From Wallemia ichthyophaga EXF-994 (taxonomy: Eukaryota > Fungi > Basidiomycota), in NCBI RefSeq assembly GCF_000400465.1, contig NW_008806278.1, positions 292,592-324,591 of the forward strand: 32,000 nt of DNA, written 5' to 3'. Position 1 is the stretch's first letter. Each line of letters begins with the position of its first letter. Below are positions 3,101 through 18,364 of this stretch, in pieces. The notes under the pieces were generated by a model. That model saw only the letters and a list, made by a program, of their open reading frames with translations. It was not told the origin of the DNA and did no database searches. A program made the translations under genes and the position numbers.

Positions 3101-6100
3101 GAGCATTAGCGACAATAGCCTACTAGACGCCACTACATTGGGTTTCCTGATGCCATTGATCGACAAGGTCGTTTTCGAAACAGGCGTTGGTATTTCTAGA
3201 GAAGATCACGATGGTCTAGAAGAGCAGCTGACTTTGTCATTGGGACTGCTTTCGACCCATAGTGCTGTAATGAGTGATGTGAACTATCCTCGCTCAGCTA
3301 TCATTAGAGTCCTCCTCAAAGCTATTGGATCATACACCAAACATTCCAAAGACGCATCTAGCACGCTCGTAAATCTTGGCGAATCTCTCCGCGATAATGC
3401 TACGTATGATGAGTCTACTAAATTGATTCAAGGCACTCTCGCGGATGAAATTTATGTTCGCTCATCATGCTTACAGGCTTTACAGGTAAGTTGGTAGAGA
3501 GGTTTTATTGATGCTTGCTAACAACTTCACAGCCAATCGATATCACTGATATTGAATTCCCATCTGAGCTTTGGCTCGCTTGTCATGATGATGATGAGCA
3601 AAATGCAGCACTAGCTAACCATCTCTGGGACGATAATGGTTTAGATGTTCCTGAAACATTCCTTGCAACACTTATCCCTTACCTCGATCACGAGAATATA
3701 TACGTCAGATTCTCATCTGCTAAGGCACTCACTGGGGCTGTAGAAAACTACCCTGCTCAGGTTTCTTCAACGCAGCAGGCATTGCAGGAGCTATACTACG
3801 AGAGAGCTAAGCCGCTCGCTCCAGAATATGATGAATATGGCATGATTATTCCTGAAACTATTGATAGGACGGACCCTTGGGAAACGAGAAACGCAATTGC
3901 TGGGTCTTTACTCAGTCTCTCATCGTCTTTCGACGAGAAGGAGATCGTTGGTCTCTTCGACTTTATGACTAAAGGGGAAGCTCTCGGAGATGCCCATCCT
4001 AGTGTTCGTCGAGAGATGCTAGAAGCTGGTATCACAGTTATTGATATCAAGGGCAAGGAAGCTCTTCAACCACTCATTGAGATGTTTGAAAGTACCCTTA
4101 AGCAAACATCTACAACTGAAACGCAAGATATGGTATTCGAGGCAGTTGTAATTTTCTTCGGTAGATTGGCTAGACATCTTGAACCAAGTGATGAGCGAGT
4201 TCCAATTGTTATTGATAGACTGATTGAAGCTTTGAAAACACCATCTGAACTGGTTCAATCTGCAGTAGCAGATTGTTTACCACCGCTGGTGCAGGCTAGA
4301 ACGGAGCAGAGAGACTCATTGGTGAAATATCTCCTTGATGAACTCATCGATGCTGATAAATACGCTGCAAGAAGAGGTGCTGCTTATGGTTTGGCTGGTG
4401 TTGTTAAAGGCGTTGGCCTGAGCTCGTTCAAGCAATTCGATATTATGCGCACTCTGAAGAAGTCTGCTGAAGATAAGAAAAATATGCAAGCGAGACAAGG
4501 TGCTTTGTTTGCATTTGAAACTCTCTCAGCAACTCTTGATCGCCTATTTGAACCTTGGATTCCAACTTTGATGCCTATCTTGCTTACATCGTTTGGTGAC
4601 TCAATTCCAGACGTTCGTGAAGCTACTCAGGATGCTGCCAAAGTTATCATGAGTAAGCTTAGCGTAAGTTAGCCTTAATATAACACTTGCACGTAATTGA
4701 CAATAATCAGGGTTACTGCGTCAAGGTCATCTTACCATCACTTCTTGAAGGTTTGGAAGAGAAACAATGGAGGACAAAGAAGGGATCGATTGAACTGCTT
4801 GGTGCTATGGCTTTCATGTCTGCAAAGCAACTATCGGTGTCTCTCCCAACAATTATCCCTCAGATAGCCGAAGTACTCACTGATACTCACTCGCAAGTAC
4901 GCTCAGCGGCCAATGCAGCATTAAAGCAATTCGGTGAGGTCATCAACAACCCAGAAATCAAGGCTATGTCCTCAGTATTGATCAAGGCACTTGTCGATCC
5001 AACTGCCAAGACGGCAACTGCTTTGACTACGCTTCTCAACACGGACTTTGTTCACTACATTGACGGACCTTCCCTTGCTCTTATCATACCAATCATTGAA
5101 AGAGGTTTACGCGAACGTTCTACTGAAATGAAGAGAAAATCTACTCAAATTATTGGTAACTTGGCCTCATTGACTGAAACAAAGGACTTCTTGCCATATA
5201 TGAAGGTTCTTCTTGAACATGTACACAACGTTCTCGTCGATCCTGTCCCAGAGGCTCGCGCAACTGCTGCTAAAACTTTGGGTAGCTTGATTGAAAGATT
5301 AGGAGAGAAAAACTTCCCTAATATGATTCCAAGCTTGATTAGCATGGTCAGATCAGATACTTCAGGTGTAGATAGACAAGGTGCTGCTCAAGGTTTGGCA
5401 GAAGTCTTGAGTGGTCTCGGTATGGAGAAGATGGAGTCACTGTTGCCTTCATTCCTCGAAGACACCAAGCACGCACGTCCATATGTCAGAGAAGGTGCAA
5501 TCAGTTTGCTCATCTATTTACCAACAACGTTTGGCCACAGATTCACTGTTCATCTCGGCAGAATTGTTCAGCCAATTTTGAGTGGTATTGCTGATGAGTC
5601 GGAGTATGTTAGAGAAGCGTCTATGAGAGCTACCAGAATGATTATCGCCAACTACTCTAACAAGGCTGTTGATCTTCTCTTGCCAGAACTTGAACGTGGA
5701 TTGTTCGATGAGAGTTGGAGAATCAGACTCTCTTCTGCACAACTCATGGGTGATCTCCTGTTCAGAATCACAGGTATCTCTAGCAAGATTGAAGTTGATG
5801 ATGGCGAAGGTGAAGGCGGAGAAGACGAAGAAGGTGGAGATGATACATATGGTCGGACTGAAACAGCCAAGAATCAATTGGTTGAGATTCTTGGCGTTGA
5901 AAGACGTAACCAGATTCTTTCAGCTATCTATCTCTCGCGTTCTGATCAAGCACACCCTGTCAGAGTTGCTACAGTGCAAATCTGGAAGGCGTTGGTACCA
6001 AACACTCCAAGAACTGTCAGAGAAATTATGCCAACACTTATCGAAAAGATTGTCACAATTCTTGCTAGTGATTCAATTGAGATGCGGGAAACTGCTGCAA

Positions 6101-16469: not shown

Positions 16470-16627
16470 CTGACGCAGACCTGCATACACAAGCTAAACA
16501 ATTGTATAAAGTATATTTATATTGCATTGAACAAATTATGGTCATAGAATAAACTAAAGAGAGGTATTATAGAATGATCTGAAGTGAGTTGTTAATAAAT
16601 GAAGAAGGAATGCACTAGAGCAGTGAA

Positions 16628-16728
16628 GCAGGTATCAGAGGGGTTTGCCCGAAGATTGCGTTGGTTGGTACGGGCCATTTCCTCAAGCTGTATCGGAAGA
16701 CCGTCGTGATAAGACATCATGTAGCTGC
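16628..16728 (-). ncRNA. snR73: Box C/D snoRNA snR73/SNORD35 (25S Cm2959 guide)
   Basis: C box ATGATGT (16720-16714). The 12-nt guide TCACGACGGTCT (16709-16698) is exactly complementary to LSU rRNA AGACCGUCGUGA and is followed by T + D' CCGA (16696-16693). The +5 rule hits the first C of AGACC. D box CTGA at 16638-16635; GCAG/CTGC terminal stem. Confidence 0.88.
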
Positions 16729-16837
16729 CGAGACTGCTCTAGAGGCAAGAAGACTTACCGAAAGCGTAAGAAAAGCGTTTGCTAGGTCTAACAGATTAAT
16801 GTTAGTAGGAATTTTAACCAATCAGTCAAATCTTCCT

Positions 16838-16922
16838 CTATTCAGAAATCCACAATAACCTCAAGGCACTTGGCTCAGAGACTCTAGTTTGATATCGCGT
16901 AGATGTAGAGTCATCCACGAGG
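16838..16922 (-). ncRNA. snR78: Box C/D snoRNA snR78 (25S Um2421 guide)
   Basis: C box TGGATGA (16917-16911). The 13-nt guide TCAAACTAGAGTC (16892-16880) is exactly complementary to LSU rRNA GACUCUAGUUUGA and is followed by T + D' CTGA (16878-16875). The +5 rule hits the U of GACU. D box CTGA at 16845-16842; short CCTC/GAGG terminal stem. Confidence 0.88.
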
Positions 16923-16992
16923 GGGACGTGACTGATGAGTGAGTGTTGCTTACACTAGCAATTGTGTTAGTATGGGTGCTTGAGATATCTCA

Positions 16993-17072
16993 GGCGACTC
17001 AGTGTATTAAAAATACAGCCTTATTAGTATCGTCATGGTGATACGCCGGTAATTAATGTCATCTTTGTCGCC
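16993..17072 (-). ncRNA. snR77: Box C/D snoRNA, probable snR77/SNORD65 homolog (18S Um578 guide, shortened)
   Basis: Terminal stem GGCGAC/GTCGCC flanks a C-like box AAGATGA (17065-17059) and a D box CTGA (17002-16999). AATTACCG (17054-17047) is complementary to the conserved 18S CGGUAAUU, and the +5 rule from a degenerate D' (CGTA) points to the U of GGU. Only 8 bp of pairing, so the family call is tentative while the snoRNA call itself is stronger. Confidence 0.55.
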
Positions 17073-17086
17073 CTCATTAAACTCAC

Positions 17087-17202
17087 TTGATTGTTAAGAA
17101 TAGAGAAAATATTCTTCAAAAAACCGTTTTATACCCAAATAAAAAATAAAAAATGTGACAAGTGAAAATATTCATCGTTGCACACAAACAATCAACTTGT
17201 AA
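17087..17202. promoter_or_regulatory. Very short divergent promoter shared by the snoRNA host (minus) and homoserine dehydrogenase (plus)
   Basis: Only 116 bp lie between the host's first donor and the HOM6 ATG. The interval contains a minus-strand TATAAAA (17133-17127) and the A-tract AAATAAAAAATAAAAAA. Confidence 0.55.
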
Positions 17203-18364
17203 ATGGTTTTATTCAACGCAGCACAATCAACTCAGAAGACAGTCAACGTCGCTTTGATTGGCCCTGGCGGTGTTGGTAGTTGTGTGCTTGAGCAGCTGTC
17301 CAAGCTCAGTCAATTCAAGCTTATAAGTATTTCAAATTCAAAGGCAACTTACTTCAATCCATCTGGCATTCCTTTTCACTCCGCCAAAGCTGATTTGTCC
17401 AAAGCCACGCCTAAATCTATCGAGAAGGAGTTAATTCCTCAGTTATCGCAGCACCAGCCATGTATTTTCATCGACAACACCTCATCCGATGCTGTAGCCA
17501 GTCTCTACCCCGTTGCTCTATCCCACGGCGTGCACGTTGTTACACCCAACAAAGTCGGTTTCAGCGCGTCCCTCAGTCTCTTCAACCACATTAGAGACGC
17601 CAGCGCTGCTAGTGGTGCGTACGCATACAAAGAGAGCACAGTGGGCGCTGGATTGCCAGTTATTTCCACTCTCGAGACACTCCTCAAGACAGGCGACAAA
17701 GTAACCAAAATCGAAGGTGTCCTCTCAGGCACCATGTCATATCTTTTCAACACCTTCTCGAAACCAGGCACCAACGACGATATCCTCTTCTCCAAGCTTG
17801 TTTCTGATGCTCGCGACCAGGGATACACTGAACCCCACCCGGCATCTGATTTGAGTGGGAGTGACGTAGCGCGCAAACTCGCTATCCTCTCGCGTCTCGT
17901 ACCAGGTCTGGAAAACCGTCTCGAGGAGGGTGTGCACAGTGTGGATGTCGAGTCACTCATTCCGCCTGGCCTCGATGGTGACACAACCCCGGAACAGTTC
18001 TTATCCGGCCTCAAGCACCACGACGCTCATTACGAGTCTCTTAGGAAGACAGCCAGCGATGCCAATAGCGTGCTGAGGTATGTGGGCGTTGTCGACACCG
18101 CTGATGGCACCGTCAAGTGTGGTTTGGAAACGTGAGTCTGGTCTTTTTGATTGAATCTCGTCACACTGCTCTCATCTCACTCTCTTCTACAGTTACCCCG
18201 CTTCTCACCCCCTCGCTTCCCTCTCGGGCTCTGACAACATCTTCCTCTTTCACACTCAACGTTACGGCGCTCGCCCTCTTATTGTCCAGGGCGCTGGCGC
18301 TGGCTCGGACGTTACAGCCATGGGTGTTGTTGGAGATTGCATCTCTATTGCCGAGAGAGTCTGA
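17203..18364 (+). CDS. HOM6: Homoserine dehydrogenase, 2 exons, 366 aa
   Basis: Exons 17203-18131 and 18193-18364 (61-nt intron). Motifs: VALIGPGGVG (NAD binding), FIDNTSS, VVTPNK, ESTVGAGLP, GVLSGTMSY, GYTEPHPASDLSGSDVARK, QGAGAGSDVTAMGV. Confidence 0.95.

Follow-up and report, generated by a model that had tools for sequence, protein, structure and literature searches.

We propose, at a probability of about 0.8, that a single T at position 16954 (minus strand) serves constitutively as an internal exon, one nucleotide long, in a non-coding, UHG-like snoRNA host gene of the halophilic fungus Wallemia ichthyophaga. All positions given without a handle refer to the window, the whole stretch of 32,000 nucleotides that was analysed. 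Read directly, the minus strand from 16972..16948 is TACTAAC ACAATTGC TAG T GTAAGC, identical in its letters to the ACTAAC-acaattgc-TAG-T-GTAAGC from which an earlier, sequence-only reading had suggested such an exon. The branch-point heptamer TACTAAC of intron 1 occupies 16966..16972, with the branch A at 16967 and 12 nt from there to the G of the acceptor. The acceptor TAG (16955..16957), 8 nt downstream of the heptamer, holds the first AG past the branch point, and the donor GTAAGC of intron 2 lies at 16948..16953. An acceptor and a donor that both look functional therefore stand exactly 1 nt apart (TAG/T/GTAAGC, 16957-16948), and the T between them, exon 2, would be retained in the mature RNA. 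We refer to this arrangement as the node.

The branch sites of the snoRNA introns seem unusually strong for the W. ichthyophaga genome. Only two TACTAAC heptamers occur on both strands of the window, at 16972-16966 and 16807-16801, and they form the branch sites of introns 1 and 2 of the host. At the node, 10-13 nt separate the branch A from the acceptor in the different lineages, much as in introns 2 and 3 of the window (13-14 nt). The intron of the neighbouring HOM6 mRNA (18133-18190, plus strand) is without any CTRAC motif.

Layout of the host gene and its snoRNAs

Based on its signals, the locus is best described as a non-coding, UHG-like host gene on the minus strand, with three introns that each carry one box C/D snoRNA. 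Transcription would start from a TATA box at about 17133; this TATA-like element, TATAAAA at 17127..17133 (minus strand), is a putative promoter, and every lineage whose contig includes the region has a TATA-like box 40-47 nt ahead of the first donor. Exon 1, probably some 10-20 nt long, falls within the interval between the box and the first donor (17087..17126). Intron 1 (17086-16955, 132 nt) has the donor GTGAGT, the branch site TACTAAC and the acceptor TAG, a layout that is the same in all lineages with contigs spanning the region. Intron 2 (16953-16788, 166 nt) has the donor GTAAGC, the branch site TACTAAC at 16807-16801 and the acceptor TTAG. Both outer sites of the earlier reading, a donor GTGAGT from 17086 and an acceptor TTAG ending at 16788, are thus present. 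Exon 3 (16787-16759) measures 29 nt and is not conserved in sequence; its length elsewhere is 35 nt in W. mellicola and 44 nt in the metagenomic lineage L006. Intron 3 (16758-16579, 180 nt) combines the donor GTAAGT, the branch site ATTAAC at 16596-16591 and the acceptor CAG, and is followed by the exon 4 region (16470..16578), which extends from intron 3 to the stop codon of a convergent SANTA-domain gene. All of these features are on the minus strand.

Counted from the TATA box, the spliced host RNA would be at most 179 nt long. Its longest open reading frame is 25 aa, lies wholly in the last exon and is unchanged with or without the T. Since there is no reading frame longer than 25 aa and the longest one is confined to the last exon, a coding role for the T is ruled out. 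That the host is non-coding, as the sequence-only reading had assumed, is borne out both by this short reading frame and by exons 1 and 3, whose identity between lineages is at the level of shuffled sequence. Without conserved sequence or reading frame, the exons would be mere punctuation between introns.

The host gene lies between two protein-coding neighbours. HOM6, encoding homoserine dehydrogenase, diverges from it on the plus strand, with its ATG at 17203 and a first exon 100% identical to a W. ichthyophaga protein. The 116-nt interval between HOM6 and the host gene is common to both and holds the TATA-like box, and the SANTA-domain gene converges on the locus from the side opposite HOM6. 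The NCBI annotations of W. ichthyophaga, W. hederae and W. mellicola contain nothing in the host-gene interval (window 16470-17202; L001 3294-4001; L018 2267-3001; L021 upstream of 2501).

Each of the three snoRNAs sits between the donor and the branch site of its own intron, with C and D boxes present. SnoRNA A in intron 1 (16994..17071, minus strand) belongs to the snR77 / snoR77Y family and has a C box AAGATGA at 17065-17059, a D box CTGA at 17002-16999, a terminal stem GCGAC/GTCGC and the 5' guide AATTACCG, the target of which we take to be U578 of the 18S rRNA. It is 0.84 identical to its W. mellicola counterpart, compared with 0.59 for shuffled sequence. SnoRNA B in intron 2, snR78 / SNORD52-like, spans 16842..16917 (minus strand) from the C box TGGATGA to the D box CTGA, contains the D' guide TCAAACTAGAGTCT followed by CTGA, and is 0.97 identical to the W. 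mellicola and 0.82 to the L006 copy. SnoRNA C in intron 3, snR73 / SNORD35-like, spans 16635..16720 (minus strand) from the C box ATGATGT to the D box CTGA, with the D' guide TCACGACGGTCTTC and an identity of 0.91 to W. mellicola.

At Rfam gathering thresholds the whole window yields zero matches, so that all three snoRNAs are missed, and the family matches come from permissive Rfam searches of the window and its relatives. In these, the window copy of snoRNA A gave merely weak generic C/D matches, and its L006 orthologue matches snoR77Y with E = 2.5e-5, a match below the gathering score. SnoRNA B matches SNORD52 with E = 0.12 in the window and 0.0027 and 0.0036 in relatives, all below the gathering score. 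For snoRNA C, the match to SNORD35 has E = 0.0022 and 26.7 bits and does not reach the gathering score of 36.

The 5' guide of snoRNA A may be decaying in W. ichthyophaga and W. mellicola. In L006 (2016-2107), the D' box is a canonical CUGA and the guide agrees with the snoR77Y consensus guide over 11 nt. W. ichthyophaga (window 17060-17030, minus strand) and W. mellicola have degenerate D' boxes, CGUA and CAAA respectively, and these two species keep only about 8 nt (AATTACCG) of the consensus guide. A separate scan for outgroups with the snR78 guide TCAAACTAGAGTCTCTGA matched five contigs, none of them Wallemia-like. Four of the five were rejected as coding-like or without snoRNA features, and the fifth as unrelated and marine, with tandem SNORD52-like copies. 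This marine metagenome contig (L017, about 900-1250) carries two SNORD52-like guide copies (TCAAACTAGAGTCTC[TC]GA) some 270 nt apart, probably a tandem snoRNA cluster of an unrelated eukaryote.

Conservation of the node among Wallemia lineages

Orthologous intervals from five further lineages were located by synteny with the homoserine dehydrogenase gene, and the node is found in all six Wallemia lineages examined. It reads TACTAAC-N8-TAG/T/GTAAGC in the window, TACTGAC-N8-CAG/T/GTAAGC in W. hederae, TACTGAC-N8-CAG/TT/GTAAGC in L005, a close relative of W. hederae, TGCTAAC-N6-TAG/T/GTAAGA in W. mellicola, TACTAAC-N6-CAG/T/GTAAGA in L012/L022/L023, and TACTGAC-N9-TAG/TTGT/GTAAGT in L006-L011, the most distant lineage, which comes from metagenomes and has a HOM6 only 74% identical. 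Exon 2 is accordingly 1 nt long in four of the six lineages, 2 nt in one and 4 nt in one; in the L006 lineage it can alternatively be read as 2 nt with the donor GTGTAA rather than 4 nt with the donor GTAAGT. Among the relatives, the intron 1 acceptor is TAG or CAG throughout, and the intron 2 donor is GTAAGC, GTAAGA or GTAAGT throughout.

The conservation of these signals has to be seen against their surroundings. MAFFT alignment of the inter-snoRNA spacer misplaced the node and found nothing alignable outside the motifs; a motif-anchored comparison and segment identities were used in its place. Among W. ichthyophaga, W. mellicola and L006, the snoRNAs are 0.69-0.97 identical, and exons 1 and 3 and nearly all intron spacers show an identity no higher than that of shuffled sequence. 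For the TATA-to-donor interval with exon 1, identity between lineages is 0.54-0.63, compared with 0.53-0.57 after shuffling. The nine splice signals of the three introns are all kept in the same three lineages and, by inspection, in W. hederae. The sequence-only reading had held that a lack of conservation of the internal sites in related species would refute it; every relative instead retains the branch site, the acceptor and the donor. Because the splice elements are kept while the sequence around them is randomised, we infer that the three elements of the node are held by selection, and an acceptor-donor distance that varies only from 1 to 4 nt is as expected if two adjoining splice sites are both used and under selection.

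The same data bear on the possibility that the snoRNAs are cut from an unspliced polycistronic precursor, as in the snR72-78 cluster of Saccharomyces cerevisiae, with the splice motifs persisting as fossils. According to work cited in PMC5033589, S. cerevisiae indeed processes the homologous cluster with Rnt1 and Rat1/Xrn1 and without splicing. Fossil motifs are hard to reconcile with nine splice signals that are all kept despite saturated divergence around them, the spacers are without significant structure, and clusters of this type have been reported as intronic in Basidiomycota (PMC3596301). We regard an unspliced precursor as barely credible.

Could the node have arisen by chance? The composite motif CTRAC-N4-20-YAG-N0-4-GTRAG, scanned for on both strands of the 32-kb window, occurs once, at the node, compared with 0.44 occurrences expected. 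When the inter-snoRNA spacers (76-107 nt) are shuffled, a node with a GTAAG donor appears at a frequency of approximately 0.6-1.7 x 10^-4, so that a random spacer of matching length and composition would contain one in about 1 of 10,000 cases, per lineage. Judged by these frequencies, the node is not a product of chance.

Conservation also distinguishes between two ways of placing the donor of intron 2. In the window, W. hederae, W. mellicola and L012, the letters AG-T-GTAAG would also permit a donor GTGTAA that starts from the G of the TAG (16955) and overlaps the acceptor. [quoted passage not shown] However, the GTAAGY or GTAAGA that comes next makes a better donor than GTGTAA, the overlapping hexamer becomes GTTGTA in L005 and GTTGTG in L006, so that only GTAAG is conserved, and neither intron needs the removal of the other to complete its signals. 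Shared-G nested splicing with a negative exon was rejected on these grounds, the overlapping GTGTAA not being conserved and the non-overlapping GTAAG being so, and we consider it very improbable. As far as the sites can be read, the Wallemia node would represent classical splicing around a one-base exon rather than obligatory recursive or nested splicing.

Within W. ichthyophaga, three further assemblies (L018-L020) equal the window over all 733 nt (16470-17202), which suggests that diversity within this species is very low. An AT indel inside intron 2, some 10 nt past its donor, distinguishes two W. mellicola strains (L001 and L002; GTAAGAGATATAT[AT]TCCC); indels hence occur beside the node, not within it. 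In the neighbouring gene, the L006-L011 lineage has a single continuous homoserine dehydrogenase reading frame of 369 aa, and the HOM6 intron of W. ichthyophaga, W. hederae and W. mellicola is absent from it.

Probable splicing and release of the snoRNAs

What is the relevance of two splice sites that enclose a single base? Intronic snoRNAs of the box C/D type normally become free when the lariat is debranched and exonucleases trim it up to the snoRNP, a route that gives one snoRNA per intron (PMC5033589, PMC2780460). Release from an own, debranched lariat needs one snoRNA per intron, which would place the splice signals under selection. Two snoRNAs in one lariat would require an additional endonucleolytic cut. 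A search of the inter-snoRNA spacer for an RNase III stem-loop found none that is significant or conserved (folding z = -1.2, -1.8 and +0.7). Given the extra cut that would otherwise be required and a spacer without such a stem-loop, both internal splice sites would be needed, while the exon between them would not. The earlier suggestion that a 1-nt exon allows each snoRNA to leave in its own lariat is supported by the conservation of the sites amid randomised surroundings. Splicing that includes the T would yield the junction ..AATCAA-T-ACCTAG.. (k-mer TTAACAATCAATACCTAGCAAACG).

Alternatively, the internal sites may mostly be skipped, leaving a single intron of 299 nt (17086 to 16788) with both snoRNAs, which would then be parted by an endonuclease or left joined as a sno-lncRNA-like species. 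The junction would in this case lack the T and read ..AACAATCAA-ACCTAGCAAACG.. (k-mer TTAACAATCAAACCTAGCAAACG). The outer donor and acceptor are good sites, and skipping is a minor pattern in snoRNA host genes of Neurospora crassa and Candida parapsilosis. Very short exons are moreover prone to skipping where splicing relies on exon definition. Against skipping as the main route, all six lineages retain the internal branch site, acceptor and donor amid randomised surroundings, the internal branch site is a perfect TACTAAC, the spacer offers no significant or conserved RNase III stem-loop, and the individually spliced pattern is the major one in C. parapsilosis. We therefore consider predominant skipping decidedly unlikely, and some 17086-to-16788 skipping may occur in W. 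ichthyophaga. JGI metagenome contigs were scanned for the junction that splicing would create in W. mellicola, exon 1 joined to exon 3 through 0-2 nt, and gave no match.

If the T is indeed a constitutive exon, the two introns around it probably do not leave together. With only 14 nt between the branch A of intron 1 and the donor of intron 2, two spliceosomes are unlikely to sit there together, and introns 1 and 2 are thus probably removed sequentially. Sequential removal of the flanking introns has also been proposed for a 1-nt exon in Arabidopsis (PMC4674806). Either order would work, in that the remaining intron keeps its complete signals. Removal of intron 1 first would give an intermediate ..AATCAA-T/GTAAGC (k-mer AACAATCAATGTAAGCAACAC), and removal of intron 2 first an intermediate ..GCTAG/T-ACCTAG.. 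(k-mer ATTGCTAGTACCTAGCAAACG).

Some base pairing around the node is possible. In W. mellicola (L001, about 3760-3790, minus strand) and likewise in L012, the donor of intron 2 could form a 7-bp stem (CUCUUAC/GUAAGAG) with letters that lie upstream of the branch site of intron 1, and in W. ichthyophaga (window 16973-16952) AUACUA pairs with UAGUGU. The fold z-scores of these donor-pairing stems range from -1.2 to -1.8 and are not significant. Removal of intron 1 would free the intron 2 donor from such a stem.

As to the origin of the exon, neutral deletion plausibly shrank exon 2 until the acceptor of intron 1 nearly touched the donor of intron 2. Such a state would be sticky, as the loss of more sequence would ruin a splice site and insertions would find hardly any target in an exon of 1 nt. 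One may instead speculate that Basidiomycota (Wallemia) and Saccharomycotina (the Candida clade) acquired near-zero exons independently, and that selection, not neutral shrinkage, kept them small, an idea we regard as unlikely. Selection could then act through overlapping footprints that force an ordered, 5'-to-3' removal of the introns and hence an ordered assembly of the snoRNPs, or through a spliced host RNA that, at well under 200 nt, cannot be exported or translated. Stems that pair the branch and acceptor region of intron 1 with the donor of intron 2 could in that case belong to the ordering device.

Relation to known one-nucleotide exons and adjoining introns

The closest parallels are found in the Candida clade. 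In C. parapsilosis, C. orthopsilosis and Lodderomyces elongisporus, RNA-seq revealed single-base exons between snoRNA-bearing introns in the host clusters II (snR57-55-61) and III (snR41-70-51), and the same clusters show nested splicing, with a negative exon size, and recursive splicing, with an exon size of zero (Donovan et al. 2016, PMC5033589). As related cases, these authors cite ordered splicing in C. albicans, described by Mitrovich et al. 2010, and an exon of zero length in Debaryomyces hansenii, which they credit to Luo et al. 2013. The Candida clusters and the Wallemia locus have in common a non-coding host, one box C/D snoRNA per intron, branch sites of the TACTAAC type and two snoRNA introns one nucleotide apart. 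Classical splicing removes both introns in Candida cluster III, as we read it for Wallemia. Cluster II, in contrast, shows shared-G nested splicing, for which Wallemia has no need. The systems further differ in that the Candida clade belongs to the Saccharomycotina and involves other clusters, whereas the Wallemia locus is basidiomycete and carries snR77-, snR78- and snR73-like snoRNAs, members of the yeast cluster I. The Candida exons are known from RNA-seq, the Wallemia exon from its sequence.

The layout of a single-base exon between snoRNA introns is thus already known from the Candida clade, and we propose no new mechanism in Wallemia. The view of the sequence-only reading that 1 nt is at the physical limit of exon size stands, but such an exon is not unprecedented, given its documentation by RNA-seq in Candida hosts (PMC5033589). 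Our search of the literature found no description of the Wallemia locus, nor of micro-exons in basidiomycete snoRNA host genes. New are the basidiomycete example of a near-zero exon in a snoRNA host, the different junction, snR77-like to snR78-like, within a three-snoRNA gene, and the comparative series of exon lengths of 1, 1, 1, 1, 2 and 4 nt. This series suggests that the length of the exon is itself free while both splice sites are held, which supports the constraint of one snoRNA per intron as the selective force. Exon 2 would accordingly be a clean natural case of an exon that is informative solely as a separator of two introns, and a fungal spliceosome that works by intron definition appears able to accommodate, for long stretches of evolution, an acceptor and a donor that enclose a single base. 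On the practical side, the whole locus is missed by gene finders and by Rfam gathering thresholds. Large losses of snoRNAs have been reported for Wallemia sebi in a study of the fungal snoRNAome (PMC5824354). Since annotation and Rfam gathering thresholds miss the host locus, some of the reported Wallemia losses may be failures of detection.

One-nucleotide exons also occur in protein-coding genes, as described for Arabidopsis (PMC4674806) and for CYP621A of Fusarium (PMC12940212), and long reads identified 13 of them in the basidiomycete Coprinopsis cinerea (PMC12230235). Here, as in Wallemia, an acceptor and a donor lie one base apart, and the Coprinopsis exons show that a basidiomycete spliceosome copes with exons of one nucleotide. 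In the protein-coding genes, the base is held by the reading frame, whereas the Wallemia exon has no frame to keep, and its length drifts among relatives (1 to 4 nt).

Long introns of Drosophila contain zero-nucleotide recursive splice sites (Duff et al. 2015; preprint 10.1101/006163). These ratchet points resemble the Wallemia node in that a juxtaposed and conserved acceptor and donor subdivide a stretch of intron, with stepwise removal. At ratchet points, however, no nucleotide is left, the donor is regenerated from the upstream exon and the introns are very long, while in Wallemia 1-4 nt remain, the donor is complete before splicing and the introns measure 132-166 nt. A zero-nucleotide ratchet point was rejected for the node, given the 1-4 nt between AG and GT in every lineage and a donor GTAAG that is complete beforehand. 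The alternative of the earlier reading, a two-step removal like that of stwintrons, does not fit either. The stwintrons of filamentous fungi (e.g. PMC8469720) and the Wallemia introns are both pairs of adjoining U2-type introns in a fungus that are, or in Wallemia would be, removed consecutively. In a stwintron, a signal of the external intron (donor, branch site or acceptor) is split by the internal one, whereas no signal is split in Wallemia; the donor, branch site and acceptor of intron 1 are all intact, as are those of intron 2, and a stwintron was rejected.

In its general organisation, the Wallemia gene is akin to the UHG and GAS5 hosts and the snoRNA clusters of N. crassa (PMC2780460), in which the introns are the products, the exons are unconserved and have little coding potential, and each intron carries one snoRNA. 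The exons of those hosts are normally tens of nucleotides long or more, unlike exon 2 of Wallemia, which would have been reduced to a single base between two complete introns.
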